DNA of 64,000 bases from Marsupella aquatica (lineage: Eukaryota; Plantae; Marchantiophyta): the NCBI GenBank assembly GCA_973895155.1, contig OZ316899.1, forward strand, positions 6,513,241 through 6,577,240, read 5' to 3'. Position 1 is the first letter of the stretch. Each line of letters opens with the position of its first letter. The notes beneath the pieces were generated by a model. It did not search any database. It was not told the DNA's origin and was given only the letters and a program-made list of their open reading frames with translations. The position numbers and the translations under genes were made by a program. Below, piece after piece: positions 5,165-44,586 of this stretch.

Positions 5165-5660
5165 CACTACAACATATGTGACACTTTTGCGAAGGTATTT
5201 TTGTCGACGCTCTTGTATTTCCGATGGGCGGCGCTTGGCATAATTTGTGAATCAACCCGCATCGCAATTTGCGATTCTATCCCTATCGCAAAGATAATAC
5301 TTGAAGCGCATTATATCGCTAATATGTTGCGAAGTAAATGATTATGCAAGTTTTACCGAAATGCGCCGAATGGAAAGGTGCCTTCTGAAGACGCCAAAAT
5401 CGCTCGCCGACTCCAAAACTAACTGATGTAAATATTTGCGAAGAAGGTTGGATTGAAATGTTTTTGCGATAGTAGTTGTTTGACAAGTTTAAGAATGTCA
5501 AAGGATGGAAGATTTGCGAAACGGTGAGAATATGGAATTTGTGATTGATTTTGCATCACAAGGTTGCAAATAGTATAGTATGGAAATATTGAGAAACGAG
5601 AAGCTTCATATAAATTGCGAGTCCGGTGAGATTTTGTTAGCTTCGCAAATTGTTCGCAAA
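5165..5660. repeat. CACTA-1 terminus and subterminal repeat field (TTGCGA/TCGCAA)
   Basis: CACTA followed by many short motif copies in both orientations. Confidence 0.85.
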
Positions 5661-6128: not shown

Positions 6129-9100
6129 TCACACTTGGTCCTCATCGGCCTCAAGGTCATCTAGGTCTGATACAATAACATCTGGTTTCTCGGAAACAAT
6201 GGAACAAGAACGTGGCACATAGGTGATGACAATTGACCACTCGGTGTCTAAGGGGTATGGAATGTAGAAAACATTGCTCCAAGTGTGATGGGAAAGCAAA
6301 TGGTTATGATGTTTGCCAATGAGATGCTTGAACACTAGTGGCACTTGTCTTCAACCGTGTAAACCCACTCTCATCTTGAAGTACAGTGCAATTTTGACCA
6401 ACAAGGTTCACTTTGAACCACTTGCAGTTGAAGACATATTAGTCAAACTTTGAATGGTTGTCATATGATACCACCAAGATCTCCTCTATCTTCCCATAGT
6501 GTGGCACAACATCTCTAACAATGTTCCTGTCATGGCGGCTGCTTCTGGAGTCTTGAGAAAATTCCCCTTGAACTCCACAATCAAAAGTACGACCCCTCTT
6601 CTCATCAAGGGAAGAAACCCTGAAATTAACAAAACCCACAAATTTTTATTACACAAAAGATACCATTAATGTAATAATCATCAAAATATGATACCCATCC
6701 CTAAATAGCCAAAACCCACATGGCCTATGGCATAAATATAGAAGCCAACATTATAGTTATGGATGTCATTAATGATAATAGAAAGTTTTTAAACAATAGT
6801 AATAACTAATCAAAATAAGGTCTACATGAATTAATAGAGGAAGAAAGATTAGGTACTAGTGGACCTGAAGTGTCTCCCTTGTGTCCACATAGCTGTCTTG
6901 GATGTCACCACTCTCAAAGGGTCATGAACAATGGTCTGAACGTCATCTGTGATGGTAGGAAAGTGGGACACATCTCCTCCTTGTGTCACCATGTCATCCA
7001 ACTCAAGCAACTTTTGCTTCATATACTCATGCATCTTAGGAAAAATTCTTGCTCTTTGACTTGTTCTCTTGGCATTCTCATAAAACTCTGTTCATTTCTC
7101 CATGATATTACTATTACTCAACATAAATGTTGTCAACTGTGACCACTCTGTTGATGTCAACATGCGTGTTTTTGTGGCACCTGTTAAACGGTCCTCCTCC
7201 TCTTCTTTTTCCTCCATTCAAGTACGTGGACAAGTAGGATCAATGGTGGCCAAGATGTTACTACAATAAAACATACTCTCTGTTGCCAAGTATCCTGTAG
7301 CTATGCTTTCCTCCACCCGTGCACGGTTACGTACATAAGCCTTCAACACCGCCATGTAACGCTCAAGCCAATACATCCATCTACAATGCACTGGACCAAC
7401 AATGGCAACCTCCCGCACAAGATGCACAAGTAAATGAACCTGACAATCAAAGAAGGAAGGAGGAAGGGCTTTCTCCAACTTGCATACCACCTCAGCTGCC
7501 AATACCTCCATCCTAGGGATCTCTTCTACGTATATCTCCTTTGAGCATATCCATCTCAACAAACGACCCAATGACCAGATGGCATCTTGCACTTCTTCAC
7601 TCCCTATACCTATAATTGCCACCGGTAATATATGTTGCAATAGGCGATGATAGTCATGTGTCTTCAGATATCGTGGCCACTTGTGATTGTCCTCCATCCC
7701 AAAAGCTTTCCGAAGGTTGGCACCATAGCCTGTAGGAAACCGCATCTCTCCTATACGGTTCCAAAATTCACGTCTTTGGCCAACACTCAACACCCAAGGA
7801 GCAGAAGGACGATTCTCCACACCTATGATAGGATCAGTTGTCACCCCAACATCTGGATGCATTTCCATCTCCTCGCATGCCTCCCTAAAATTAGTGTCCT
7901 TCTCCCCATAAAAATGCTTTATCAAAGCCTTCCCCACATTTCCCTCTATGTGCATGGGGTCTAAGAGATGACGGATCTTCAACTCAGACCAATAGGGCAA
8001 AGTGGCTAGTATACTCCACCTGGTCAAACCTGTCCTATCAAAGGTGAAGGAATCATTTGGGTCTACCACCCTATCAGCTAGTGGCTTCCAATTTGCAAAA
8101 CTTATTGCATCAGGAATTTCACGCTCATCACCAAATGGCATGTCAAAGGAGGAGAATAGAAGTGGGTCAAACCTCATCTCATGTCCCATGGGAAGAAACT
8201 TTGTATGCCCAATATAAACAATCTTTCTAATCCATGAACAATATGTGGCCATGTCCTCTAAGCTTGGGCCACAAGTAGAGCAAGCTTTGTACCCCTGAGT
8301 TTGCAATCCAGAGACAAAACCACACCCTGCTTACATAGAAGAAATCAAACCATGCAAACTTTATGTTAGGGTTGTCACATGAGAAACAACAATAGGAACT
8401 ACACATTATCAAAGGGTTGCAAATGGCATGGAAGTCATCTTACCAGGAGAGTCATGCATTGTCCAACAAATGATCCCTCTCAATTGAAAGACACGTGGAA
8501 AACCTCCTGTAATTTTCCTGCCATCATATGCCCACACTCCATCCCATAATTTTTGAAGTTCTCCAACCAATAGTGCCAAGTAAGTGTCAAAGTTCTTCAC
8601 CTTTTTTGGACATGGGATAATCAAAGACAATAAAAGGAACCCCTTCTTCATGGATAGCCATGGTGGGAGGTTATAATTCATGACAACCACAGGCCAAACT
8701 GATGTAGGTTGCCCCTTTCCTCCAAGTGAATGAGGGCTAACTCCATCAGATGCCAATCCTAGCCTCACATGGCGAGGATCATGTGCAAAGTCTGGCCATG
8801 TTGCCTCAATATGTTTGTGAGCAAGGGAGTCAACTGGCAACCGCATGACACCAGACTCTGATCGATGAGTCTTATGCCATACCATCAACTCTGCCAAGTC
8901 AGAACACCAATACATGTGCAACAACCGAGGAATGATGGGAAACCAACAAACAGCCTTCCTTGGCACCTTCTTTGTTAGCATGTTGGGGTCATAGCGAGGC
9001 TCATCACATGTTGTACATTGTGTCATTGGCCCCATGAAATAACATGCAATCATTCACACATGCATGAACAATATGATATTCCATGCCAATAGATGAGAGA

Positions 9101-9605
9101 ACACTCTTTGCCTCCTTCCAAGTTGTTGGCAACACATTCTCAGTGGGTAACATAAGGTCATGGCAAAGTGCAAACATATCAGATAACAAGGCATTGCTTG
9201 CCTTGTGTTTGGCCTGTAAGTTCATCAATCCCAAGATGGCTGAAAGACGACTCAAACGAGCACCCTCATAGGTGTTTGGGCATGTTCCTCTGCTTCTTCC
9301 CATTGGCGTTGTCCCTCAGGGGTATTTTTTGGGCGTGGATCATTGGGAGGCACCTGCCCTTCATTGGGAAGGTCATCATCGGGGTTGTCGGCACCAAACC
9401 AATCAACCATAAAGTCATCCATGGCTCTATCCTGGTCATCAGTTACTTGTTCATCCGTCCCAGGTACCTCTTCATCAGGGTTACTGCTTCCACTAGCACT
9501 TGATGAGGAGCGTGACTCTAATCCATGTCCTTCTTCTGGCATACCCATTTCTCGATATGTTGCTCTCAATCTCCGTGGTAACATATTTGGAGAGGGTCGC
9601 ACATT
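6129..9605 (-). pseudogene. CACTA Tnp2/TnpD-type transposase (Transposase_21, DUF4218, DUF4216 regions), multi-exon, frameshifted
   Basis: HACVNDC, VRLGLASDG, WPVVVMNYNLPPW, HLLDPMHIEGNV, LKTHDYH, FFDCQVHLLVHL, RWMYWLERYM; GT-AG intron 8443-8327. Confidence 0.95.
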
Positions 9606-9781
9606 CTAAAAACAAAGCAAGCAATTGAAAGTTATACTGCAAAGAGAACACACACAAAAATGGGCTAGGGGTGTGCAAAAATGAAATAATATTGGTTGTG
9701 GTGCAAATACAAAACATGGCCAAAGGCCATATGTAGTGTCATTTGATATGCAACATACCACCTATGACCCTTAACTTAACC

Positions 9782-10597
9782 CTAATCCCACTCATAGTGA
9801 GTAAATAACTCATCCCCTGAGTTAATGGTCCTCATCGCTACAACTAGGCAATGGTCATGATGATATGTCTAGCCATAAGGTGCTGGCGGAGGACCCTCAA
9901 TGAAAACCCACTCACAATTTTGCCTACGCTTAGGGCGAGTCCCCACAGTACTTTTTATGAAACCAGCAATATTCCCAGTCCGTATGGGGTCCCCATCTAT
10001 GACACGCTGCTCACTATACCTTCTAGTGTTTCCATCAGAGGTATCCATGTCCAATGCATAAGTCTTCCACTCAGGGTGTTGTGCAAGGATCATGTTCCAA
10101 TGTCTTCTCTTGTAGATGGGTCCACCATAAGGAAACAAAGTAGGCCCCTCTCGGCCGCGTCCACCTCTACCACTCTCGGCGTCCACAATGATGTCCTCAC
10201 AGGCAAAAACTCCATAGCCATGTCTATCCCCAAGTGTGGAAGGTTTGATAACCCAACGTCTACCCCAAACCTCTACCTCCTCACCATAGGAAAGCTGTTG
10301 TGGCAAACCAAGAGTCTCAAAATCCCAGTCCTTGATGATAGGGACACATCTGCTAGTGAACTCACAATCACCCCACCTACCCATAACCACTGCCTTGTAC
10401 AAATCAGTATCCCCTCGGGCCCGCCTCTTGGAACGCTTTCTCCCTCTTGGGACAATAGCCTCAACCCCAACTTCCCTAGGACTGGTGGGCCTTGCCGCTA
10501 GACCCAAGGCTTGTGAGAATGCATTGCCTATAGCATCTAGAACACCTTGTGATGGGACATAGGGTGCTTGTGCCGCAGGTCTAGGCCTATTGGATAC
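9782..10597 (-). pseudogene. SET-domain exon (lysine methyltransferase-like) inside CACTA-1; one premature TAG at 9869-9871
   Basis: IKPSTLGDRHGYGVFACEDI, FPYGG, IDG..GNIAGFIKS, NCEW, then in frame past the stop DHCLVVAMRTINSGDELFTHYEWD*; AG acceptor at 10599-10598. Confidence 0.85.
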
Positions 10598-10700
10598 CTA
10601 TTCCACCAAAACCAAAACAAACAAAAGTAGGTGTGAAATTAAAAACCTTCAACCATTGAGTAATGGGAATAGGGTAGGAAAACTAAGGCATAACACTTAC

Positions 10701-10934
10701 CATATGAGATGAAGAAGCCCCTGCCATATTACGTCCACAATGCCCATATCTCTCAATATGTTGGGCACATATGTAAGATTTTTGGGAAACCTGACCCACA
10801 CATCTGGAACATTCACAAAGTTGACGCGGTGGACCACAAGGAGGAGGTGCGGTCGTGTGATGTTGAGGTGGAGGTGGTGTATCTTCATCAGAGGACGACG
10901 AGTCTGTGGTGGAGATTTCAGAAGATGAAGACAT
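10701..10934 (-). CDS. First coding exon: Ser/acidic and poly-Pro stretch plus transposase-associated Zn motif
   Basis: CECSRC...CAQHIERYG; ends ATG|GTAAGT (phase-0 donor). Confidence 0.75.
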
Positions 10935-12300
10935 ATCCCCTGTAACAAGATATAATTAAAATGGGCATGTTATGACCAAAACATACCACAAAATGATATA
11001 AATCAAAGTTCCCAAATAATGATGACAAGAAACCCAAACCAAAATGACCATAGCAATAAAAAAAGGTACCTTTATGAGACCCGGGCTCAGCAGTGCCAAT
11101 AGGTCTTGTGGCTCTAAGATAATTAATGAACCCAATCTGAAAGTATGAGGGAAAAGCTGCAAGCATTCCATGTATATGTAAGCACAATAATCTGGACAAG
11201 ACAAGAACAAAAAACCCTATATACTGTCCCCTTTATACATAGTGGCAACCAAAAGTGTTAAGTACATGAAATGAACACTTGAGCCGGTCATGCAATGTTT
11301 ACCTTTCAGATGCCTGGGCTCTCACAATGCATATGCATTAGTATCAAATCATCAAAAAGTGCCGCACCCTGCAAGCTATCATATATTCCCCTCCTTTGTT
11401 AGCAAAACCCATGCCAATCCCTTTTTGATTCATAAACCCAATGAACCTCTCTTAAACCCAAAAGGCTGCAATATAAATCTCATGAAACCTTGCTTTGTCT
11501 TATCCAAACCTTCAACCCCAAACCGCATCCTACCTATTAAACCTAAATCTGACTTACACATAAAACCAAACATTTCTTCAACCCTAGAGACCTTTCTATT
11601 TAAAAACCCCAAACCCTAAAACCCTAAACCCAAACCTTACTTATTTCTTGTAAACCAAATCCCGCACCTTTATTATTTCTTCTAAACTAATGTAAACCCA
11701 AACCTTAGCCTAAACCAACACCATACATAACCCATTAACCTGAAATCTGCCTAACCCTTCAAACCCACCTTCAAGTATGATTGAGTTGAAACCCTGAAAC
11801 CCTAAACCCTAACACCCAAAACATGGCCAAAAAGCATTCCAAATATGAGTATAGAGGGGTCCATGGCCAAAAAGCATTCCAAATATGAGTATAGAGGAGT
11901 CCACTTTACCTTTGAAAAAAACCCTTTCAAATGAAACCAACATTCCCCCCAAGACAAGTTGCCAATGTCTTGCGAAGCCACTTCCTTCGCAAATACCATC
12001 ACAAATTAGAATTGAGTTTTGCAAAGCGTATGCTTTCGCACGACCTTCAGAAAAACAGAGCCCAAGAGCATTTCTGCGAGAGAGCAAAGGTGTTGCAAAA
12101 CCTTTCACGTCGCAATGGTTTCGCAAAATTGAGAAACTACATGCGAAACAAGAAGGATCGCAAATTGCGAAACAGGTTGCTTCGCAAGTCTTTCCCGCTT
12201 GTACTTTAGCACTCGGCCGCGGCGTACTCAGCGGCATTTGACAAATTTCAAGCGTAGGGAGGGAGAAGGGAGCTCGCGCGCGCTCGGAGGTGGCTTAGCT

Positions 12301-14169
12301 ATGGATTCCAGTGGAGCAAATGGAGGTGATGGGGCAGGGGTGAGTGATAGTGGCAATGGGAATGAAGGCAATGGGGAGCAGGAGAGGAATCGATGGACCA
12401 ATTTGATGGCTAAGCACCTCAATGCAGCACAGTTGAGTCGCTTAGATTTGACTACACCAGCAGGGATTGCTTCTTTTAGTGCAATCCTAGGGCAAGCCTT
12501 GCAAACGGGAGTAGCTGCAGGGAACATTGCAAGGGAGGAGGAGCAAAGGAGTGCAGCTCAACAGAAGGCAAGAGAGAAGAAGCGTAAGAAGGAGAAGAGG
12601 GCCAAGGCAGGAGTAGTCTCACCTGCTGCCCTAGAAAAGAAGAGGAGAGAGGAAAGAGATGAGATAAGAGCACAGCGGGAGGAGCAGCGAAAGAAGGAGG
12701 AAGAGAGGAAGAAGCTGCCTATGATTGCCTTGATCGAAGGCATTCCTACTAAACTGGCCTACACCGGGGCAAAGAGCACTATCAGGCTTATGGTGCGCTC
12801 CAATTTTGCACGAGGAGTTGAGTGGGGGAAACTCAGCAAGGCAGACCAGAGGAAAGTAATGAGTCAAATTAAAGATTCATTTCGAAATGGAGCAGAGATT
12901 GATGAACAGTGGCTTGCAGATAGAATTTCCAATTCAATGTCTCAAGCACGGTACCATGATAGGAAGAAGGTAAGGGCCTACCTGGCAAACTTGGAGGAGT
13001 ACAGAAACGTGAGGAGGCCACTGCAATTCACTGAGGACGTGTGGAATGCCTTTTACAAAGTGGAGGTGCAGATGAGAGCTGCCAGGAACCTTCTCTTCTG
13101 GAAGGAGATGGAAGCCAAGGCACAGAAGGCCGGGAAGTCCAACCGAGAGCTCAAGGGAATGGCTGAGAAGGTGTCTCACATGCAGCACATTGTGGATGAA
13201 GTGGGGGCACCACCTCAAAAATTCATCCTTGCAGCTGAGCGAGTCAGCAAACGGCCCAAGACCACGCACAAGATGGGCCAAGGTGGACTTCCCGGCCTCA
13301 AAGCACACTTTGTGAGTGGGCCCTCTCCTCCCCTGCTTCTGTTTCCTTGCTTTCAATTGCTATCCAACCTGCAATGCCCCCTACATACCTCTTCTTTCTT
13401 TCTTACGGCCTGCCTTGTACTTTAGGTCACCCTGACACATTGCGTGCCTTAAAGATTTCTCGGAATTAAAAAAAACAGAGTTTGCGAAGCTTTTGCAATG
13501 CGGGTTGCTTCACAAATGTTTTGCAAAGTCTATTATGGCATTTTTTAAAGTTATAGATGCAAAGCTATTGCAAACTAACCCGCTTCGCAAACTACTTCGC
13601 AAACAGCCAATTTATTTGAATTTGCGAAGCGGGGAGTTTCGCAAGTGTATATTATATTTAAAAAATATCGCTAAGGGTTATTGAGCCCAGTTTTGTGTTA
13701 GGGAGCACCCTATTAGCACCTCCATGCATTTTTCTTGGGTTTATGGCATATTAACCCCAATCTATTTTGGTTTTGGAATGTTTGGTTGTGGTAGTATAAG
13801 AGGTACCACAGGAAGATAACAGCAAAAGAGATGGAGATAGGAGCTGCGCATGGAGCCAAACATCTCTTTGACTTGGTTGACGCAGAGTTGGCGACTGTAA
13901 GTGCATGTATCCCCTTCAGTTTTTCCCACCCAATCCACTTATCTTTTCATTCCGTAAACCTAAACCAATTTGGCGTTGTGCTGTGCAAACAGGATGATGA
14001 GGATGCCAGTGATACCAGCAGCACTGATGAGAACAATGAGGGGACCACGACAAAGGGGCCCAAGGTAGGAGGGAGTAGTGGATCTGGACCAGTAGGAGGA
14101 GTTTCCCAGCAGGAGGGGGAGGAAGAGGATGAGGACAAGGACGAGGAGGAACCAGATGTGGAGGAGTAG
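12301..14169 (+). CDS. CACTA-1 second gene (TnpA / Transposase_24-like), divergently oriented, spliced
   Basis: Long open exon with RPLQFTEDVW and TTHKMGQGG; donors GTGAGT ~13312 and GTAAGT ~13896; homologous to 31920-32851. Confidence 0.65.
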
Positions 14170-22284: not shown

Positions 22285-25200
22285 CTATCGGCATCTGCAT
22301 CTCTGAACAAATGCCTCTACCCTTGTCACAGGAATGAAGTCCCGACTATCATGAACTACAGGCACTTGGTCTGAACGCCGACGATCAAAGGCACTATGAG
22401 AGTGTAAATGAAACTCAAGGTTTGATCCTTCCATCCAATGTTGCCTGGCCTGTTTATGACACACTACATGCCAACCTGGGGAGTCTTCCACATCCAAGAA
22501 GAAAGCTTGCTCCACTTGACTGGGAAACACAAATGGCTCAGACCATTCGGGCAATTTCCCTCTGAAATTGGCCAACAAGAAACCATCGTTGTCTCTCTTT
22601 ATGGTAGCCCTATTACCAAGCCAATCTTGCCACACCCATGAACCTTTCATAAGAATCACAGGACTGGACACCGACCCATAGTCCAGAGCCCATATGTCAA
22701 CTAATTCTCCCACATATCCCATCTCCGTCCAGGCCCTGTCGTGATTGTGGTTCTATTGCTCAAATACAGTGATGAGCCCATAGTCATTTGTCACCCTGTA
22801 GGCACTATCACCATCCTTCACTCAAAAGTGATTCCCATATGCTCTCATCCATTTGTAAGTCTTCACTTTCAAGCTAGGGGCATTAGACAGTAGGTAAAAG
22901 TCTGCATCCATGTCTGGGTGGGTCTCGTGATGCTCTCTAATTGCCACTCTGATCCACTCCATGAAACCTGGAAAAGTTGTTCCTGTAGTGGGATGGGCCG
23001 CCTTCAATGACTCATACTCCCTGAACAAACAACCACACAGCATTAGCTTGGCTAATATGAACAGGCTGAAGGAGAATACACAACATTTAAGCTCATGAAC
23101 TGGATTATAGCACATGTATGCACTCACTGTATCCAGGGTTCCATCACCACAGTGTTGTGCAATACAAAGTCATGTGCCAAGTCTCTCATAGATATAGTTA
23201 GGTTCTTTGTGGTTGCAGCCCCTTCCAGTACTTCACCTATCACTCCTTCCTCCTCATCAGAATTCCACACCCTGGTCTTCACATGCTCATATTGTGCTAT
23301 GTATTCGGTCAGAAATCCCAGAGTCTCGTCCTTGATGTAACCTTTAGCCATGCTTGCTTTAGGTTTGTAATATGTTCTCACGTGACCTTTGAGCAGCTTC
23401 ATGTACCGTTCCAAAGGGTACAACCAACGAACACTCACAGGCCCAAATTGGTGTAGCTCTTTCACAACATGGACAAGTAGGTGAGTCATGACATCAAAAA
23501 TGCTGGAGGAAAATAAATCTCCAGGTCACACAGCACCTGAGCGACATCTTCTGTCAGTTGTGGGAAGTGGGTTTCATCCCAAAATCACCCTATTCATTAA
23601 AAGTGTATTTTATTTTGTTCACTTTTAGGCCTCGAAATGTACACTTTTGGTCTCTAAATGTACACTTTTAAACACCAAAAGGTATATTATAGTACAATAT
23701 TCTACACCTAAATAGTCAATTGTAAACTTGAGGGAGAAAAAATGATCTTTACTAGAAGGAGTCTCATCCTAGTTAATTTATAAAAGATGAACATGATGGT
23801 ATGTCTGATGGCCATCACTTTTATTTCTTGCCCAAATGTACACTTTTTGAAAGCCAAATGTTCACAAATTGAATAATAATTCACTTTTAATGAATAGATT
23901 GATCAAACCCTTCATACAAATATGACAAAACACATCACTGAGTCGCATGATCACATAATTACGAACACGCTTCTGCAACAGGCCCCTCGGGCATAAAGGC
24001 AACACCTATTGCATCAACATATGGTAGTCATGGCTTTTCATACTACCAAGCTTTCTAGTCATGATATGCTTCTTGAAAGCACTGCCATAGTTTGAAGGAA
24101 CCTTCAAAGAACTCAACCTCTGCACAAATAGTTTCCACTCTGTGTCTTTCAGAACATAGGGCGCTTGGTACTTCAAGAGCACATCAGCTCTGTGGGCATG
24201 TGGCCTCAACCAAAGATGGGGTTTCATTCCCCTCTGTTCAAGATCCAATCTCACAGGACCACAAGAATCTGAGTAGACTCTCACAAATATTCTTCTCAAT
24301 GTGCATAACATCAATGTTATGTTTGCTTGGCTCAAACTCCTGCACCGTTGCAATGCAAGAGCGTCAGCAAATGCCTCAAGTTTAGTCTCTCTCTTCGAAA
24401 TGAATGCACATGCTCTAAACCAAAACATGTATCCCAATTAGCATCAACTCCAAGAGGCTTACCCTCCAATACTTGAGCTCCAAGTCCAATATGCTATGTC
24501 TTTTTACACCATATTGCTTTATTGGATCACTCACTCCATCTTCCCTGCCCCCTCGTTTGATATAGTCATCCCTCAGTGCTCCCCACTGCTTGATCTCCTC
24601 TTTGGTCACTCGTGCCGGGGTCCACGTTGCTCAATCTCATTGCCAAAGTGTGCAATCAATGCCTATCTTTCTCTGTAAGGGTGATCTGCCTTCAGAAAAT
24701 GACAATGGCCCATGTATATGACTTTCTGCAGGGCTTTGGAGTACTCACTAGTGACATTGCGCCCACAGATAGTACAAGCACAATATCCTTTTGTTGTTTG
24801 GCCTGATATCATCCCATGGGCTGGGTAGTCAGCTATAGTTAGAATGACAATGGCTCTAAGGATGAATGGGTTTAACCTCCCAAGCCTATGTAGGACATCA
24901 TATGTGAGAACTCCTTCCTCCCAAAGCTTTCTCAATTCCTCCACTAGGGGAACCAGAAACACATCTATGTTGGCAGATACAGCACTGTCTGGCCCTGGTA
25001 TTAGTAGGACCATCAGAACAAAAAATTGTTTTGTAGTCATCCAAGGAGGAAGGTTATAATTCAAAATCGTTATAGGCCAGCACACAAATTTGTTGTTCTT
25101 ATCTCCAAATGGGTTTACCCCATCCAATGACAACCCAAGTCTGACATTCCTTGGCTCAGCAACAAATTTGGGATACATCTCATCTATGAGTTTCCACTGC

Positions 25201-26300
25201 CTTGAATTTGCTGCATGTCTTTGTAGCCCATCAACACTTTTCTTGTCAGTTGCCCAAGTCATCATCTCCGAGATGGCATGGCTTCTAAACATCCGCTGAA
25301 GTTTGGGAATGAGTGGAAAATGACAAAGTACCTTGGCGGGAACCATAGACTTTCCTGAGTTCCGATACCTGTGCTTCCCACACTTAGGGCATGTCAACAA
25401 TTCTGCATACTCCTTTCTGAAAAGAGCATGCCCATCAGGACAGGCATGGATGGAATCATAGTTTAATCCAAGATTAGATATGCATCTTTTTGCCTCGAAC
25501 ATGTTCTTGGGCAAAATATTACCATCTGGTAGCACAATTGTTCGCAAGAATGCCAACAACTCAGAAACTAAAACGTTGGGGACATTGTGGTTGCCGCAAA
25601 TGTTCAGACACATGATGACAAATCCCAGTTTAGAACATTTTCTACCAGGGTACAAAGGCTTCCTGCCTTCCTGTATTTGCAGGAGAGAGCCAAACATCCC
25701 ATCATGCCCAGGGGTTTCCTGCCCTATCTCAAACTCATCAAGAGGCTCTTCAACAAGGGGCACACTTGCATCTGCAACCGTATCCTCTTCGTTGTCCAAC
25801 CCATCGTGAAATGCATCCAAGTCTTGGAAGATGTCTCTCACCATCTCTTCCACATGAATTCCTTCGTCATGTGGTGTTGCCTGAGCACCATCCCGTTGGA
25901 GGGCTGACAACCCACAAAGACCAGCTACAACATTTTCAAATGCACCAGACAGAACCTCACTTGCAGCATTGGCAGCATCAAATTCTAACCTCCACTCCTC
26001 GTTGGAAGAATCTTCCTTTGCAAGAACCTTCCAAACTTGATGTCGTGGATCTCTTCCATGAACCGCAATATGCCGCCAAACCTCATTTAGACCCCTGGTA
26101 TGGGATCCTTGGTAGATTGCACAAGGACATCTCATCCTATTGGCTCCTGAAAGTCTGGTTCGTAACCTTTCACGCTGCCAAAGCTTATTATCATGGTGTG
26201 AAATCCTTGTGGGATGATGCAAAGGCAGTGCCTGTGCCCTGGGCTGGGTTTGGGGAGGGTGGTGACCAGGGTGCATTGTAACAGACTGGAAGCTCTGCAA
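22285..26300 (-). pseudogene. CACTA-2 Tnp2 transposase (Zn motif + Transposase_21 + DUF4218 + DUF4216), spliced, degenerate
   Basis: CPCAI...RHIAVHG, IHACPDG, RNVRLGLSLDG, NYNLPPW, ADYPA, MKSHDYH, THLLVH, RWLYPLERYMK, EPFVFPSQVEQAF. Confidence 0.95.
23584..23903. mobile_element. MITE-like insertion (~320 bp) in the CACTA-2 transposase
   Basis: Terminal inverted repeats atcaccctattcattaaaagtg / cacttttaatgaatagattgat; CAAA on both flanks; AT-rich; internal tgtacactttt repeats. Confidence 0.8.
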
Positions 26301-27564: not shown

Positions 27565-30500
27565 CTAATGTGTAATGCTATCACATTGTTTCCTATCCAC
27601 TGCCATGATATACAATCCAAGTTGCTTTGGTGGCAACCTAAATAGATCATGCAGATCAGAAACAAGGATTTGATGTGCTATTCGAATCTCCTCATACCGT
27701 CTACATGCTATGAACACATGATATTCATTCTCAATGCTGCCACTATCACAGAGTCTACACACCCTATCCTGCCTCCTAATTCCCTTCCATCTACCCTCCT
27801 CTATCTCCAAGTGATGTGAGCTGAGTCTATATCTAGCAATCACTTGTCTCAACCTCATAGAAATGGGAGCTCTAAGATACTCTTGTTCTTCATACAACAT
27901 CATGGGGTTTACATCCCTCATAAAATACTGTAATCTAGGGCTAGGATCACTCCAAAGTTTTCTAATAGCTTTATCACGCAAGAGTGACCAAAGCTTCTTT
28001 GGTTGAGTATGCCATTCATGCTCAGATAAGTCCCATGATTGGGCCCAGCTACATACATCAGCATACCAACCAAAAGCTCTAGATATGTGAAAGGCTTGCG
28101 TAGGTAGCCTAGAATCATTCAATGCCTCCACTCTCCTAGCATATTGAAGAGTGTGATAGAGAGCTTCAACCTCCAATGGTAGAAGACCTACCTCAGCCAA
28201 TAACAAGGGGTATGGGGTTTGGGTTTTCACTCCAAGCTCCATCTCCAAGAAAAGCTTTTGGATGGCCTCTACCTTTTTCCAACAAGATTGAGAAGTAGAA
28301 GGGCCCCATACTTGCACCCCATAAAGAATAACAGGCCTTACCAAGGAATTGAAGAGTTGTTTCTTCAACTTCCAAGCAGAAAGGCTTGCTCCCTTGCACT
28401 TCTGAACCATGCTGTAGAAGGCCTTGTAACCATGAGCCACCCTATGCGTCACACATGTAGCCCAACTCATGCTTCGAGAAAACTCCACCCCAAGATACTT
28501 GTAAGAGGTCACCATCTCCACCTTTTCACCTGCAAAATAGAGAGAAAGCTCTTGCTTTGTACCAAGTACAAGGCACTTGGTCTTCCTCATGTTGACCTGC
28601 ATGTCTGATTGTTTGCAAAAATGCTCTAGGGCTAGAAGATGTTGTTGCAAATCAGATTGGGAGTGAGCTAGAAGCACCACATCATCTGCAAATATAAGAA
28701 GTTGGATGGCCAGTGTTCCCAACTGAGAACCTACGCCTCCCATCTCCTCTAGCAAATCATGTAGTTGGTCAATGAAGATCCCAAAGAGCGTTGGAGATAG
28801 TGGGCAGCCTTGGATCACACCAAGTGTGCTAGGAACCTCCTCATAGCTACTACAAGAGAATCTAATCATTACCTTTTGATACAATTGTGCAATAGAGCCT
28901 ATTCTCATCTCAAGAGGAACTTCGAGACTAATCAACTGCTCCCAAAGCTTGTGTCTACAAACCCTATCAAATGCTTTGGAGAAGTCTACAAACAAGCAAA
29001 ATAGAGGTAGCTTGAGTCTTTTAGCCCTCTCCTCTAACACTCTAAGGCAAAGCATGTGATCTAGAGTACTAAAACCTGCCCTAAAACCAGCTTGTGATGA
29101 TGCTCTTTTCATGTGTTTTTCAACCCAAGAACTAAGTCTAGCTTCTAGTAGTCCTCCTAAAACTTTAGCAAAGATACTAGCTATCATGATAGTCCTATAG
29201 TTGCTCACCTCATTCTTAGAGCCTCCCTTGTGAATAGGTACCAATCTCCTTGTACTCCAATCTGGAGGTAAGCCACCTTGGACCACTTGATTCAAACATG
29301 CAGTGAGTGCTGATACCAAAAAAGATCCACCCCATTGTAGGAGCTCCACTATGAACCCTTGCAAATCTGCAGCCTTGCCCTTTTGCATTCTAGATAGTTG
29401 AGTTTGCACCTCTATATCTGAGAATTGAATAGCTTCCCCAATCTCCAAAGGCATGGAAGTAGCTTCGGGATAGAAGTAGAGAGACTTCACATAGCTTACC
29501 AATGTTTGTTGTTCCAAGCAAATATCTTCTTTTTTCACCTGAAATCTCTTCCAAAAGCCTTTAGGATTCTCTTGAAGTTCTTGGGAAAGCACTTGTTGAT
29601 GTTGCCTCATGAAGCATCTCTTCTTGTGCTTCACAAAGTTACTATACATTCTCAATGCAAGTAACTTTACATCTTCAGCTTGTGCCATGCCCCTCCTTCT
29701 AGCTTCTACACACTCTGCATCAAACCATGCTTTCATGGTTTGGTTTGTGGACAATGATCTTTTAGAGAATACAGTAGTAGCTGCTTTTGCTATCAGTTGT
29801 GATAGTTCCAACGCATTGGAATGTGTTGGTAGTAGGGCCTCAATCTCCCCTCTAAATACATCAGCCTTATCATGATCCATAAAGAGTTTAGAAATATGTC
29901 TTTTCCTTGTTATCCCCTCTCTAAAACTTGTGGCCAAATCTAGATGAAATAACAAGGGTAGATGTGAAAACTCTGGTTGTTGATCAAGTATTCTAAAATC
30001 AATCACTCTACTAGCTGAAGATGGTGATGCTAGGAGATAATCAATGGTGCTACATCCTTGGCTTGATCTAAATGTATAACTTGATGAATGAGGAAATCTT
30101 TCAAGCCCATTCAATATTCTCAGATTACAAGAAGCTCCTAATTGTAGAAAATGGGGTGTCATATCATTTACCCTAGTATTTATAGCTTTTCTCAACCAAG
30201 ATGAGTCTTCATTACATGATATCCAAGGCAATGCCCCCAAATCTCCACTATCAATGAATTGTTGGTGAGACACTCTAGCATTAAAGTCTCCCACTATCCA
30301 TGTCTCTCCTAGTACTGGTACATCATGTATAACTTGAATCAAGTTATGGAATGGATATTGTGCATTAGCAGTTCCCATCTTGTACACATTCATGCTAAGT
30401 GGGGCAAAATAGGTGGCAATTAGAAATGATGGAATACCTCTAGTATGTAGTCTCACCACCATGAATTGCTTGCTTGGATCTTCATGCTCAATAGATGTCA

Positions 30501-30738
30501 TGTGTTGAAGATGATTCTTGGTGTAGACTGCAATACCTCCGAACCCTCTTCCCCTTGTGGTGTTCTTTTTATTGAAGAGAGATCCAATGCAAGTAAAATC
30601 CTTGATGCTAGGTAGATCATTCTCCTCATACTGCCAAGTCTCCAGGAAGAGCAGGATGTCAGCATTCTCAAACAAGGGTTCTCCTCCTATTGCTGATTCT
30701 ATGGAAAGTCCTGAAATATTCCATGCCATGACTCTCAA
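27565..30738 (-). CDS. LINE-A ORF2: APE endonuclease + reverse transcriptase + C-terminal CCHC
   Basis: AWN, ETW, GDFNA, IDY, SHLPL (APE); QAGFR, FVDFSKAFD, QGCPLSP, FADD, YKYLG (RT); CRLC...ENEYH...C. Confidence 0.97.
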   Translation of the reverse strand: MRVMAWNISGLSIESAIGGEPLFENADILLFLETWQYEENDLPSIKDFTCIGSLFNKKNTTRGRGFGGIAVYTKNHLQHMTSIEHEDPSKQFMVVRLHTRGIPSFLIATYFAPLSMNVYKMGTANAQYPFHNLIQVIHDVPVLGETWIVGDFNARVSHQQFIDSGDLGALPWISCNEDSSWLRKAINTRVNDMTPHFLQLGASCNLRILNGLERFPHSSSYTFRSSQGCSTIDYLLASPSSASRVIDFRILDQQPEFSHLPLLFHLDLATSFREGITRKRHISKLFMDHDKADVFRGEIEALLPTHSNALELSQLIAKAATTVFSKRSLSTNQTMKAWFDAECVEARRRGMAQAEDVKLLALRMYSNFVKHKKRCFMRQHQQVLSQELQENPKGFWKRFQVKKEDICLEQQTLVSYVKSLYFYPEATSMPLEIGEAIQFSDIEVQTQLSRMQKGKAADLQGFIVELLQWGGSFLVSALTACLNQVVQGGLPPDWSTRRLVPIHKGGSKNEVSNYRTIMIASIFAKVLGGLLEARLSSWVEKHMKRASSQAGFRAGFSTLDHMLCLRVLEERAKRLKLPLFCLFVDFSKAFDRVCRHKLWEQLISLEVPLEMRIGSIAQLYQKVMIRFSCSSYEEVPSTLGVIQGCPLSPTLFGIFIDQLHDLLEEMGGVGSQLGTLAIQLLIFADDVVLLAHSQSDLQQHLLALEHFCKQSDMQVNMRKTKCLVLGTKQELSLYFAGEKVEMVTSYKYLGVEFSRSMSWATCVTHRVAHGYKAFYSMVQKCKGASLSAWKLKKQLFNSLVRPVILYGVQVWGPSTSQSCWKKVEAIQKLFLEMELGVKTQTPYPLLLAEVGLLPLEVEALYHTLQYARRVEALNDSRLPTQAFHISRAFGWYADVCSWAQSWDLSEHEWHTQPKKLWSLLRDKAIRKLWSDPSPRLQYFMRDVNPMMLYEEQEYLRAPISMRLRQVIARYRLSSHHLEIEEGRWKGIRRQDRVCRLCDSGSIENEYHVFIACRRYEEIRIAHQILVSDLHDLFRLPPKQLGLYIMAVDRKQCDSITH

Positions 30739-33857: not shown

Positions 33858-34091
33858 ATGTCTGCTTCCGATAGTTCCACGTCGGATTCAGACTCAAACA
33901 CGAGCTCGTCTGAGGAGGAGGTTCCTCCACCCCCTCCTCCAGACCAACCTTGTGCTCGGCCACTAGGGTCCATACCTTGTTGGTGTGTGAGATGTAAGGG
34001 ACTTGTGGTTCGACATGCCTGGGAGACTTGTGAGCACATCAAGAACTATGGTCGCCACAAGGGTGATACACCAGGGTATTTGCCTAGCCAG
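33858..34091 (+). CDS. First coding exon: Ser/acidic and poly-Pro stretch plus transposase-associated Zn motif
   Basis: CWCVRC...TCEHIKNYG; ends CAG|GTAATA (phase 0). Confidence 0.75.
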
Positions 34092-34216
34092 GTAATAAAT
34101 ACGTCCCTCCTTCATTCCATGAAATTCCAATAATTAGTCCACAAATGCTAAATTACTTTACATCTAAACAACAATTCATGTATTGATTTGTGTCAAATCA
34201 TTGTTCGTTGAAATAG

Positions 34217-35151
34217 GTGCCTCGTAGACCCCCACCTCCTCTGGTTGATAATGCTATGTGGTTGGAAGGGTTTCTAGCAAGGGCTAGTGAGTTGCTTGCA
34301 TCTGCCCTTGCCCATCCACCTCTTAGTCCCCCTGCTCCTATCCCCACACATGCGCATGTAGACGAGGATGCACCGGTCTCTCGACCCGAGGAAATGGATA
34401 CTAGGGTCCTACGTACACGTTCACGGTCTCGCAGACGTAGACGACAATATGAACCAGTGGAGCAGGTAGAGAATCGGGAGGAGGCGTTACATAGTGATCG
34501 ACCACCCGGAAATGGAGATTATATTTGTGTTGAGGGCCGGTTTGGACTATCTTATCTCATTGGTAGGGCTGCTGATGTTTGGAAGGACTTTTCTCCTAGT
34601 CTCTTCAAATTTCCAGATTTCATTCATACTGATGAACCAGTTGACATATGGGGTCGGCCTTGGATAGTGAAGGCATCCTCTATTGGTGCTGATATAGGAT
34701 ATGGTCTATATGCTTTGGAGGACATTGTGGTCCCTCCAAAGCCATGGAGACGTGGAGAGCACCTTTTCCCTTACATTGGGGCTGTATATAATGCAAAGAG
34801 TTGGAAGACTTTGTTGCGTCAGCACCCAAGCTGGGGGTGTACGCCTTGAGGATGGACTTAGACCCAGATGAGGTTTTGACTAGGCCGTGGCATTGTAGGA
34901 TGATTGATGGTGACCCTATTCAGAATGGTAATTTAGCAGGGTACATCAATAGTACAACGGGTAGAGGTAGAGATTTTGAGGCTAATGTAGAGTGGATCCA
35001 AATTTTTGGCCCTCCTAGAGATCCGTATTTTGTGAAACATATGGATGACCATATCATGACAGTAGCCATTAGGACTATTAGAGCTGGTGAGGAGATATTG
35101 TGTGAGTATGAGTGGGACGCCCCAAAATTGTCCCTACGTTGCCATCCATGA
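34217..35151 (+). pseudogene. SET-domain exon inside CACTA-3; 1-nt frameshift in the G run at 34833-34837
   Basis: VKASSIGADIGYGLYALEDI, FPYIG, IDG..GNLAGYINS, ANVEW, VAIRTIRAGEEILCEYEW; acceptor AAATAG|GTG. Confidence 0.88.
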
Positions 35152-35285
35152 TAGTATGTTGGACTTACATGCATGTAAATCTTACATTGAATTAATGAGA
35201 TTCATGATGATTTATATATATATATATATATTGATGATTGTAATGAGATTAATGTTAATGAGATTGCATTGATGTTGTATGATAG

Positions 35286-38200
35286 AATCAATATGTACAA
35301 TCTGATATTGGGATCATATCACGAGCTATGCGACAACACATTGTTGAGGCCATGGTGGCCAACCATGGGCATGATGGAGGGATGCAGGAGGATGATGTAC
35401 AACATGAGGGTGATAATCCTACTCAAGCACATCTGGATGAGGAGAGGGCCATGGATGAGCTCATGGACCAATTTTATGATGATGATGTTGATATTGGTAT
35501 GGAGGATATGGGTACAACTGATGACAACACCACTCATCCAGGACCTTCTAGGGGGGGACAGAACAAGGATTGGGAGGAGGCTCAATGTCATGCTCATACT
35601 CGCATATTTGAGGGTAGCACCTTATCTCGGCTCTCCGCAATAATGTTGTTGCTGAATGTGCAGCAAAGACATGGGGCCAGCAACCTACTTTTGGATGATG
35701 TTTTTTGTACCTTGCATGATTGTATTTTGCCACCAAGCAATACCATGCCAGCCTCTTGGAAGGAGGCAAAACAAGTGTTGAAGTCCATTGGCCTCAAGTA
35801 TGTAGTGATACATGCATGTGTGAATGATTGCATTCTTTTTAGGGGGGAGCATGAGAATGCAACTACATGTCCTAAGTGTGAGAAGCCGCGCTACCATGAT
35901 GACATGTTGACAGGGAAGGTGCCTCAAAAGGTTATGCGATACTTTCCTCTCATCCCCCGATTGCGACATCAGTACCGTTGTGCAGAGTTAGCTGAGTACA
36001 TGGTATGGCACTCAAAGAATCGTTCTGATATGGCTACAAACTCTAGTGCCATGCGGATGATGGTTGACTCTCCTGCCAATCGATTTGTTGAGGGCAGATG
36101 GGGGGAGCTCAGCACTGAACCACGACATGTTCAACTTGGCTTGGCAGCTGATGGTATCAGCCCTTTTGCATTGGCGGGTAAAGCAAAACCATATTCAGTA
36201 TGGCCAGTAGTTTTGACTAACTACAATATCCCTCCATGGATGGCCATGAAGAAAGGTCATTTACTGCTCTCCATGATCATCCCGGGTCCTAAGCAAGTAA
36301 AAAAGATTGCATCTACTTGCAACCATTGATTGATGAGCTTTTGCAACTGTGGAGAGGAGTGGATTGTTATGACGGATGTCGCAATACAAGAGGTGTACCT
36401 CGTGCGTTTACCCTCAAGGCCATCCTTATGTGGACCATGCATGACCTACCAGGTATGACCTGATAAACCTTAGCTTATTTCCTTGATGTACTACCTTAAA
36501 TTTAGTGTGCATTAACCTTATTTCATAATTGGCTGGTTGTATATGGGCTTGGTACAGGGTTTGGGTATATCTCTGGATTGCAAACATCAGGCTATCGAGC
36601 TTGCCCTTCATGCGGACTGGATTTGGAGGGAGTGGCAAGACGCAAGTCAAGTACTTTGCGTAAGATAGTTTACATTGGTCATACCAAATATCTTCCAGCA
36701 GACCATCCTTGGAGGAGTGATCATTTCTTGTATGACACTGATGAGGGCCAACCTGATACTCGTCCTCAACCTCAGCAAAAGGATCCAACATATTGGAGAG
36801 AGGTATGGGAGAGAGTTCAAGACCCTGATGATCCATTACAGTTTCTCCGATGTGGCATGACTCGTTTATCTGCATTGTCACAGTTGCCATATTGGTCAGA
36901 GATGCCCATTAATCACTTGTTGGATGCGACGCATATTGAGGGAAATGTGGGAGATCATTGATTTGTCATCTATATGGGGAGAAGAACCACAACTGGAGAG
37001 AAATTTGTGAGGAGATGGGGATGCATGGTCTTTTGGGTTTTTGGCCATCTTTGGACCCCCCTGGTGATCCCCCTAGCATCCATCCTCCTTGGGTTTTGAC
37101 CAGGGCAGAGCGCATAGAGTTTCGCAGACGGATTGGGTCAATGAGGTTTCCCACAGGTTATGGTGCCAATCTTTGTAAGGCATTTGGGGGGGATGATTCT
37201 CCAAAATGGCCATCGTACCTGAAAACACATGATTATCATCGGTTACTAGAACATGTCATTCCAGTTGCGATTATTGGATTGGGTAGTGAGGAACTTCGTG
37301 ATGCTCTTTGGTCATTGGGCAAGTTTTTGAGATGGGTATGTCAGAAGGAGGTACCAGAGGATGACATTGCTGCGATGGAGATATTTGGAGTAGAGGTTGT
37401 TTGCAAGTTGGAGAAGGCACTTCCACCCTCATTCTTTGATGGTCAGGTTCATTTCCTCATACATTTAGTGCGTGAGGTAGCAATTGCAGGCCTGGTACAT
37501 TGTCGATGGATGTATTGGGTAGAGCGTTACATGGGGGTGATGAAGTCATATGTCTCTAATCGGGCTAGGGTGGAAGGTAGCATTGCAGAGCGTCATCTTG
37601 GAGCAGAGAGTATGTTTTATTGTACAAACATAGTTGCCACACTAGATCCAAGGGAACCTAGGGGATGGATAGATGAGGCGGCACGAGAGGCAGACTATGA
37701 GGATGATAGACTCACTGGGGCATCAGGAGAGCGTGGCTTAGGCTCAGCAGAGCGATTGCAACTTACAACATTTATGTTGTATAACTCACCAGAAGTTGTA
37801 GGGGAGTGGACAACATTTTATGAGGAGGAGAAGCAAAATAGTCGACGGCCACGATTGTTTCCCAAGTTTCACCCATACATGAAATCAAAGTTGTTAGAAG
37901 TGGATGCCTTGGTGGGTACCGAAGACAGTATATTACATTACCCACAAGTGACTGATAAGCTTTGTACCTTGGTTCATGGTCCACTGCTTAAAGTCACGAC
38001 TCGGACGGCATGTGGTCAAAGGGGAGACATTTCCGTGTGGAACGACTTGATGAGAAGAGAGCAGCTACACAAGATTGTGGGGTGATGGGTTGGTTCACCC
38101 AGGATTCCCAGAGTAGCGCGTCGGACATGAACCCCATTCGCTCCACCATGGCCCATTATGGGAAGATTGATAAGATCCTGACAGTGAAGTACCATGCACA

Positions 38201-43518: not shown

Positions 43519-44586
43519 TTAAATAACCATCATTGAATGTGTGTTGCTACAAAACATATTTGAGCAAGTAAGTCTACTTCTTGACTTATCAAACTTTCTA
43601 TCTCGGTTGCAAGTGTCTTTAGGATACAAGTTTCTAAACTTAGAAGTAAGGTCCCTAGTTTTTAGGACTTCCCAAACAAATTGCCGCTTATTTTGCAAAT
43701 ATGGGCCGGAATAACCATCTCCAAGTAGACCTTTAGCAATTGAATTGATGTCACGGTCACTCATATCCTGCACCGGTGGCAAACTTTGCACGGTATGCTT
43801 CACTTCCCAGGAAATCTTGTCTGCCGAGTGATCAAGGACAGTGAAATTATCGACGATGCCAGCAACGCGGTGCCCCCAGGCTTGAGTGAGTCCTGCAAAG
43901 ATATCACAATGCCTCCTTTGGGCTTCACCCTTATTGTAGGCGGACCATTTTGGGTAGTTAACATTCAGAAAGTGTCTTACATCAAAAGCATTGTGCATTC
44001 TTTGAAGAAGTGGAAGCAATATCTCCATCAGAAAAGTGTCGCCTCCCATGTTGTGAAAAAATGGAACTGGAAACAACGTGTTAACATTTGGATTTGCGAA
44101 ACACTTCAGAGGAGAGTCATCAATGAGAACAGTATTTGTCGGACCATATCTATTGCCAAAACGATCCCAAACAGTTTGGATTTCCTTGAGAAGTATGTTT
44201 GCCTTCCCATCCGTAATATCTGACCTCAAAAAGCCAGTGTCAAACGTTTCTTCTTGGGTGAATACAAACTTGAACTGCTTTCGTTCAGCATCGTTGAAAA
44301 CAAGATCCATCATTTCATTTGTTCTTGGCCTTCCCGCGCAAGTCCATATCGCGACATCGTAATACTTGAAAATCACTTGTAAAAATTTGTGAAGTCCTGG
44401 ACGCTCCACATACATAAATGTGTTCCCGCCCCGTCTTCCCCAGTGAACGCCCCTCACAGATGTGAGGCTCCGAAATGGTCCGGAGCTTTTACTCTTTACG
44501 GAATCAAAACAAACCTTATTAAGGTCAAAAATCAAGAGCTTTCGCTTGATCTCTGAGTGGAGTTTGGGAACAAACTCTGCAAACAT
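43519..44586 (-). CDS. FCP1/SCP (NIF) HAD-phosphatase-like domain
   Basis: LLIFDLNKV (motif I, DxN), ERPGLHKFL, VAIWT, LLKEI, NTVLIDDSP.K...NP. Confidence 0.85.
   Translation of the reverse strand: MFAEFVPKLHSEIKRKLLIFDLNKVCFDSVKSKSSGPFRSLTSVRGVHWGRRGGNTFMYVERPGLHKFLQVIFKYYDVAIWTCAGRPRTNEMMDLVFNDAERKQFKFVFTQEETFDTGFLRSDITDGKANILLKEIQTVWDRFGNRYGPTNTVLIDDSPLKCFANPNVNTLFPVPFFHNMGGDTFLMEILLPLLQRMHNAFDVRHFLNVNYPKWSAYNKGEAQRRHCDIFAGLTQAWGHRVAGIVDNFTVLDHSADKISWEVKHTVQSLPPVQDMSDRDINSIAKGLLGDGYSGPYLQNKRQFVWEVLKTRDLTSKFRNLYPKDTCNRDRKFDKSRSRLTCSNMFCSNTHSMMVI

Follow-up and report, generated by a model that had tools for sequence, protein, structure and literature searches.

Can a transposable element of a land plant make a chromatin-type enzyme of its own, and could such an enzyme be addressed to the element that encodes it? 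The question is raised by a 64,000-nucleotide stretch of the genome of the liverwort Marsupella aquatica (GCA_973895155.1, contig OZ316899.1, positions 6,513,241 to 6,577,240 of the forward strand; this whole stretch is called the window in the following, and coordinates are counted from its first letter), in which a reading frame with the sequence blocks of a SET domain lies between an exon with a zinc-type motif and the exons of a Tnp2-type transposase of a CACTA element. We consider it likely that this frame represents the SET exon in a decayed member of a bryophyte family of Tnp2-type CACTA elements, that the clade in question has inherited the SET module, and that a protein joining the zinc motif to the SET domain acts along the lines proposed below. 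The CACTA family probably makes its own chromatin-type enzyme.

The SET exon and its predicted fold

The feature is located on the minus strand, where translation of the window from 10597 to 9782 gives a single frame with all SET blocks, the remaining two frames of the exon containing many stops. The span to which an initial annotation of this DNA had drawn attention, 9782-10597, is exactly the SET exon, from the acceptor AG/GTATCC (exon start at 10597; slashes mark splice points) to the exon's own terminal stop (9784-9782), and its 271 codons encode a linker and, after it, a divergent SET domain. The translation displays the blocks GYGVFA (10219-10202), PYGG (10132-10121), IDGD (10000-9989), GNIAGFIKS (9976-9950), NCEW (9919-9908) and, 3' of a premature TAG codon, GDELFTHY (9817-9794). 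This TAG (9869..9871, minus strand) is the only internal stop and deprives the product of its final 28 residues, among them the E-L-x-x-x-Y block. Of five homologous loci, four read CAG (Gln) at this position and one reads AAG, so that a C-to-T origin of the stop, suggested initially as a change from CAG to TAG, is plausible.

A chance open frame was considered as an explanation and rejected, as the 242-residue piece upstream of the TAG has 44 homologues, the best of which, a protein of Calypogeia fissa, matches at E 3.1e-112 with 70% identity and 100% coverage. Many of the 44 homologues come from Sphagnum, several carry a PF00856 tag, and the clusters to which they belong contain up to 360 member sequences.

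The window copy is nevertheless a dead relic, a pseudogene in both the SET domain and the transposase and without function of its own, because of the TAG, a replacement in the I-N-S block and two frameshifting deletions in the transposase. The replacement is an AAA codon (Lys) at 9953..9955 (minus strand) in place of the family Asn, which is found in 50 of 56 members. In this block the initial annotation had pointed to the loss of the His of the N-H-S motif to Ser; this observation stands as a trait of the family, and the Asn-to-Lys change, a lesion specific to the window copy, has to be added to it. Compared with other family copies, the window transposase misses 4 bases after 9267 and 8 bases after 9023; the missing bases coincide with the frame changes of the window transposase open reading frames (ORFs), and the frame is uninterrupted in the Calypogeia locus L001. 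Fold and profile analyses were therefore based on intact natural relatives of the window protein; in codon alignments a gap took the place of the stop codon, and exons and pieces were searched separately.

With respect to domain assignment, the 242-residue window piece alone finds no Pfam match, and the 28-residue tail reaches the Pfam SET family at E 0.012 with 16.4 bits, below the cut-off of 22.4. Among the intact relatives, 11 of 13 aligned members match PF00856 at E<=0.01 (best E 2.4e-6), with bit scores scattered around the gathering threshold of 22.4 (23.2 for protein P0002, 22.9 for P0004 and 21.7 for P0001). An AlphaFold model built from a 13-sequence alignment was discarded (predicted local distance difference test, pLDDT, 39.6).

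The relative P0002 shares 70% of its residues with the window sequence and was modelled from a 56-sequence alignment with a pLDDT of 85.6, residues 61-262 being mostly above 90. Searched with Foldseek, this model retrieves 276 PDB matches at E<=1e-3, the top ones all SET methyltransferases with a probability of 1.00 and SET8, LegAS4, MLL1, ATXR5, G9a and EZH2 in the lead. VIA-align superposes it on Set1/COMPASS (6uh5_M) with a Z of 12.3 and a root-mean-square deviation (rmsd) of 2.6 A over 124 residues and on EZH2 and SET7/9 with a Z of 12.1 each; overall, Z values of 11-12.3 and an rmsd of 2.2-3.0 A over 117-135 residues were obtained for Set1, EZH2, SET7/9, SET8, ASH1L and MLL. The structural match covers residues 64-262 of the 262-residue model, that is, up to the C-terminal end, and comparable matches are obtained with viral SET proteins. 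For the intact relative P0002, structure prediction and fold comparison thus arrive at a SET fold match, as the initial annotation would lead one to expect.

Sequence profiles point in the same direction. A PDB sequence search with the 13-sequence profile gave no match; the 56-sequence family profile finds LegAS4 at E about 1e-6 with 28% identity over about 130 residues. In the profile alignment the I-N-S-s of the family corresponds to I-N-F-S of LegAS4 and I-N-H-A of EZH2, and the terminal Tyr aligns with both proteins. Conservation among the 56 members is high in the GxG block (G120 in 51 of 53 and G122 in 52 of 54), the Y/F-x-G block (G150 in 53 and Y153 in 52 of the 56), the I-N-S block (N206 in 50, S207 in 55) and the E-L-x-x-x-Y block (E254 in 53 of 54, Y259 in 50 of 52), and N218 is invariant (56/56). 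As judged from the modelled fold and from most of the positions of cofactor-binding and catalytic type, which are those of a SET methyltransferase, the exon encodes a genuine SET domain.

The N-H-S/C block of the SET class, the Asn and His of which contact the cofactor, is absent as such, its His being replaced by Ser in 55 of the 56 members. To judge from the alignment, this substitution would argue against a canonical site and not against a SET fold, as LegAS4 likewise lacks the His. LegAS4 is reported to be an active histone methyltransferase. The SET domain might nevertheless be a catalytically dead pseudo-enzyme that the element retains for binding or as a scaffold, with histone tails or methyltransferases of the host as examples of what it could bind; this would be consistent with the Ser throughout the family, with the marginal Pfam scores and with the catalytically inactive SET proteins with regulatory roles that are described in PMC12886896. 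However, conservation reaches about 90-100% in the 56 diverged members at each of the positions GxG, YxG, Asn and terminal Tyr, as it should if selection acts on cofactor binding and catalysis, and LegAS4, the closest solved relative, is also devoid of the His and was crystallised with a histone H3 peptide (8swi). A dead enzyme therefore seems a possible, rather unlikely, explanation; activity of the SET domain would be favoured by the conservation of the remaining catalytic-type positions and by analogy with the His-less LegAS4.

A probably inherited module of a bryophyte CACTA clade

Which kind of element carries the SET exon? The transposase body (7218..9303, minus strand) combines Transposase_21 (E 9.2e-37 in the ORF 8409-9053) with DUF4218 (E 5.1e-33 in the ORF 7218-8306), the frameshifts splitting it into three ORFs, and the window element thus has the Tnp2 plus DUF4218 combination of CACTA/EnSpm. 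In divergent orientation lies an accessory ORF (12199..13425, plus strand), the 408-residue Lys/Glu-rich product of which belongs to no Pfam family; homologues occupy the same relative place in the Calypogeia locus L001 (48% identity) and the Sphagnum locus L002 (60%), and the ORF may encode the second, TnpA-like protein of the element. A candidate left terminus (5165..5184, plus strand) begins with CACTA and is followed by subterminal GCGAAG-type repeats (5243-5660), matching copies of which recur in inverted orientation at 11964-12193 and 13474-13645. The borders can be placed approximately, from about 5165 to about 13650, which gives an element of about 8.5 kb.

The window contains a second, diverged element with the same module of zinc motif, SET and Tnp2 (33978..38085, plus strand). 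Its zinc exon lies at about 33978-34118, its SET exon, found by tblastn and about 42% identical to the first, at about 34445-35118 with a frameshift near 34810-34834, and its Tnp2 ORFs at 35328-36329 and 36958-38085 (Transposase_21 E 2.3e-21, DUF4218 E 1.2e-28).

The order of divergent accessory ORF, zinc exon, SET exon and transposase exons is identical in L001 of Calypogeia fissa and L002 of Sphagnum jensenii, and wherever the flanking sequence is long enough, SET is located directly upstream of the Tnp2 ORFs and shares their strand. The loci concerned comprise L001, L002, L004/5, L012, L013-15, L016 and both window elements, and the linkage extends to metagenome and Logan contigs. Across 11 loci, the identity matrices of SET and transposase give the same groupings and correlate with an r of 0.97 (Mantel p about 2e-4), a value inflated by the kinship of the Sphagnum copies. 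This co-divergence suggests one old acquisition of the SET domain.

The ratio of nonsynonymous to synonymous substitution (dN/dS) of the SET exon depends on the depth of the comparison. Between window or Calypogeia on one side and Sphagnum on the other it amounts to 0.24-0.32 (NG86) or 0.09-0.17 (YN00), and among close Sphagnum copies to 0.42-0.88. Purifying selection, not neutral evolution, is consequently observed over the deep comparisons, and the pattern as a whole is what one would expect if active lineages are under selection and copies decay once inserted.

Among 1.84 billion (1.84e9) representatives, a profile search retrieved only 129 clusters at E<=1e-3; the named ones are all bryophyte (Sphagnum, Calypogeia, Riccia), and no host-type SET family is among them. 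These data bear on the possibility that the SET frame is a recent one-off capture (transduplication) of a host SET fragment without function for the transposon. It is generally known that CACTA elements acquire host gene fragments, and the window copy is broken. However, elements of mosses and liverworts carry this module in an equivalent position, as does the 42% identical second family of the window, SET and transposase diverge together with a deep dN/dS of 0.1-0.3, and no host-type SET appears in the clusters retrieved. A functionless transduplication is hence hardly credible, and recent capture within a host SET gene, the case which would have spoken against the initial annotation, is excluded by linkage, selection and the fact that no ordinary host SET family is close. 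Together with the SET fold, the linkage to Tnp2 in 11 loci, the purifying selection and the lack of a close host SET among the retrieved clusters uphold the original proposal that the CACTA element encodes its own SET-domain, lysine methyltransferase-like protein. The SET module would be an old, inherited part of a bryophyte CACTA clade and not captured cargo.

The route of this inheritance might not have been strictly vertical. Over 9785-10558, the SET exon of the window shows 73-74% nucleotide identity to the Sphagnum loci L002, L007, L009 and L010, with a synonymous divergence of 0.7-0.9 (NG86) or 1.2-1.7 (YN00). Such a divergence from Sphagnum looks low for a liverwort and could mean horizontal transposon transfer between bryophyte lineages.

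Gene structure and a predicted splice choice

How could the SET domain be joined to the zinc motif and how does this arrangement relate to the transposase? The zinc exon (10701..10934, minus strand) starts with an ATG at 10934 (MSSSSE...), continues with a Ser/Asp/Pro-rich stretch and the zinc-type motif C-x-C-x2-C...C-x2-H-I-x-x-Y-G and ends with ...SSSHM at a phase-0 donor ATG/GTAAGT (GT at 10700-10699). It is kept in Calypogeia and Sphagnum with 59-67% identity, and no Pfam family was found for it, full-length relatives searched at E<=5 included. A GT...AG intron of 103 nucleotides (10598..10700, minus strand, phase 0) with a GTAAGT donor and an AATAG/ acceptor separates the zinc exon from the SET exon; donor and acceptor are conserved in L001 and the Sphagnum loci, and the joining reproduces the junction of the Calypogeia gene model P0001. 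Downstream of the SET stop, a T-rich spacer of 176 nucleotides (9606..9781, minus strand) leads to a second acceptor, TTTTTAG/AAT (AG at 9607-9606), which opens the first transposase-specific exon (9252..9605, minus strand; N-V-R-P-S-P-N-M-L-P-R-R-L-R-A-T-Y...AMDDFMVDWFG) in phase 0 and in frame with the donor of the zinc exon.

The donor and both acceptors are of phase 0 and conserved in three genera, so that two in-frame continuations of the zinc exon are predicted, one into the SET exon, with a product of about 350 residues similar to the annotated P0001 and P0004, and one into the transposase. A search for sequencing runs found no RNA run with the stretch, a result that does not bear on expression.

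A simpler arrangement would consist of two genes without a splice switch, a two-exon gene for zinc motif and SET upstream of a transposase which starts at its own Met (...NMLPRR...) and to which the zinc motif is never joined. Consistent with it, the transposase ORF of L003 and L004 begins at its own Met 130-290 nucleotides past the SET stop, the window, L001 and L002 share a Met located seven codons after the start of the first transposase exon, and the annotated models P0001 and P0004 start with the zinc exon and contain zinc motif and SET only. On the other hand, the six codons which precede this Met from the second acceptor onwards are conserved at the amino acid level in the window, L001 and L002 despite synonymous codon differences and start exactly at the conserved in-frame phase-0 acceptor, the Riccia model P0120 links the zinc motif to Transposase_21, and a CACTA element of the window without a SET exon has zinc motif and transposase in one ORF. 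Two independent genes are thus the less likely, though still serious, alternative.

The SET-less element just mentioned is a third CACTA transposase (24663-26300, minus strand, 545 residues, Transposase_21 E 2.7e-62), which has a comparable N-terminal zinc-type motif (R-C-P-C...W-R-H-I-A-V-H-G-R) continuous with the Tnp2 domain. Its single ORF suggests that the zinc motif was ancestrally the N-terminus of the transposase and that the SET exon is located in what became its first intron. A long interspersed nuclear element (LINE) adjoins the 24663-26300 transposase, the upstream part of which may be disrupted.

The arrangement of the exons invites another comparison. In primate SETMAR, a SET domain and a transposase (Hsmar1) likewise reside in one locus; SETMAR is, however, a single domesticated gene in which a mariner transposase lies next to a host SET, while here the element is mobile and multi-copy and its SET domain has its own stop (PMC9062482). 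A fusion product of this type, with SET internal to the transposase, could be read from gene models, as P0091 of Riccia combines SET and Transposase_21 and P0015 and P0120 contain a partial SET plus transposase. However, the SET frame has its own stop after E-L-F-T-H-Y-E-W-D/N in the window, in L001-L004 and in other loci, the P0015 model omits the C-terminal catalytic block, and gene models on transposons are unreliable, which makes a SET-transposase fusion improbable.

We return to the reading preferred here, an inherited SET module whose product shares the zinc exon with the transposase. One transcription unit would begin at the zinc exon, and alternative phase-0 splicing would give rise either to a zinc-SET protein of roughly 350 residues, terminated by the stop codon of the SET exon, or to a zinc-transposase. 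Through the zinc domain that it has in common with the transposase, the SET enzyme would reach the DNA of the transposase, that is, the element's own ends, where the enzyme would, with S-adenosyl-methionine, methylate a lysine, most likely of a histone tail and possibly of the transposase. Lysine methylation might thereby tune the chromatin state or the transposition of the element, either in the direction of anti-silencing or of self-restraint.

Several observations weigh against this reading. The Pfam SET scores reach only the gathering threshold (23.2 versus 22.4), the SET fold was modelled for the relative P0002 and not for the broken window protein, and with Ser for the N-H-S His in nearly the whole family catalysis is not assured. 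The zinc motif is without a Pfam family, and DNA binding by the zinc exon is an assumption. Near the element, neither a complementary TAGTG right end nor a target-site duplication was found. No joint at 10700/10598 or 10700/9606 was detected in four contig runs of unclear kind, which derive from two organisms and two studies and contain many family copies at 90-100% identity. In addition, L003 has zinc motif and SET in one intron-less ORF of 423 residues, which at the same time favours zinc-SET as one protein, the transposase ORFs of L003 and L004 open with their own Met after the SET stop, and in the four diverged loci L004, L012, L013 and L016 no zinc motif was seen ahead of SET. As a consequence of these separate starts and zinc-less loci, zinc-SET and transposase may be separate genes in at least some lineages.

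Known systems and consequences for bryophyte genomes

In maize En/Spm, TnpA and TnpD arise from one transcript by alternative splicing. The arrangement proposed here resembles this system in that a CACTA element would make two proteins, one of them a Tnp2-type transposase, from one unit by splice choice, which in the present case is predicted; it differs in that the second product would be a SET-fold enzyme with a common zinc exon and not a DNA-binding protein of the TnpA type. With respect to the enzyme itself, the LegAS4/RomA-type SET domain of Legionella (PDB 5czy, 8swi, 8sr6) is the closest solved structure by profile and shares the loss of the His (I-N-F-S versus I-N-S). In contrast to the transposon protein, LegAS4 is a secreted bacterial effector with ankyrin repeats and has neither a transposon context nor a zinc exon.

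SET genes have been described on other mobile elements, namely HarbingerS, Phytophthora MuDR and Helitron elements (Kojima & Jurka 2014, Repbase Reports, cited in PMC12730594 and bioRxiv 10.1101/2025.02.11.637652). These elements have PIF/Harbinger, Mutator or Helitron enzymes and other hosts; the window transposase is a Tnp2 with DUF4218 and not of the PIF/Harbinger type. A zinc-type first exon common to SET and transposase is not described in the passages on HarbingerS, MuDR and Helitron elements.

Closer in classification is a gene of the red alga Bostrychia moritziana, Plavaka accessory gene 2 (PAG2), which resides on an element of the EnSpm/CACTA superfamily and contains a SET domain (PF00856) together with a DNA methylase domain (PF01555), as one of three accessory genes on elements of 17-19 kb (bioRxiv 10.1101/2025.02.11.637652). 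The window family differs from Plavaka by the combination of zinc motif and SET, the element size of about 8.5 kb, the bryophyte hosts and the absence of a methylase domain, as PF01555 finds no match in the window pieces or the full-length relatives even at E<=5. The initial annotation had known of no described CACTA-SET module; in view of the red-algal Plavaka element this statement is too broad for the EnSpm/CACTA superfamily, and it holds for land-plant Tnp2-type CACTA elements, for which a full-text literature search, incomplete and without Repbase, found no report of a SET module. Nor did the same search find a description of a zinc exon common to SET and transposase.

Transposon-encoded factors that are thought or shown to act on the epigenetic state of their own element include the VANC anti-silencing proteins of VANDAL elements (PMC5735166, cited in PMC12730594) and the fungal transposon-borne TET/JBP dioxygenases (PMC12730594). 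The likeness to the putative SET enzyme lies in this action on the own element; VANC is, however, not an enzyme of the SET kind, and TET/JBP acts on DNA bases and not on protein lysines.

The remainder of the window holds further retroelements and isolated ORFs. Two LINE-type ORFs, 27565-30738 (minus strand, open, 1057 residues) and 56208-58808 (plus strand), each combine an endonuclease/exonuclease/phosphatase domain with a reverse transcriptase (RVT_1 E about 1e-31). The ORF 60180-61562 (plus strand) has a retroviral-polymerase SH3-like domain (PF25597, E 5.5e-13) and is probably a fragment of a long terminal repeat (LTR) retroelement. An NLI-interacting-factor/FCP1-like phosphatase domain (PF03031, E 7.9e-19) is encoded by the ORF 43519-44586 (minus strand), and its neighbour, a 366-residue ORF at 44692-45792, has no Pfam match.

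With respect to annotation, the public Sphagnum and Riccia entries name P0004, P0009, P0049, P0055 and P0091 'SET domain-containing protein', and one 90%-identity cluster of these transposon proteins comprises 360 member sequences. The 'SET domain-containing' models in Sphagnum, Calypogeia and Riccia are multi-copy transposon genes, and such copies may swell the number of SET-domain genes ascribed to bryophyte hosts.

In the usual view, transposons are silenced by the host through chromatin. The presence of a conserved SET enzyme in the transposase gene of a CACTA clade widespread among bryophytes suggests instead a chromatin state written by the element itself or a self-modified transposase, and one zinc exon spliced to either the enzyme or the transposase would, as predicted here, be a simple, testable targeting design. 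More speculatively, and with a probability that we put somewhat below that of a dead enzyme or of two separate genes, a whole land-plant CACTA clade would make, by splice choice from the first exon of the transposase, a self-targeted histone lysine methyltransferase which the common zinc domain delivers to the ends of the element and whose mark there counters or redirects host silencing; the occurrence in mosses and liverworts at only moderate synonymous divergence would then be due to horizontal spread. If true, plants would thereby have their first known case of a histone writer which a transposon encodes and addresses to itself.

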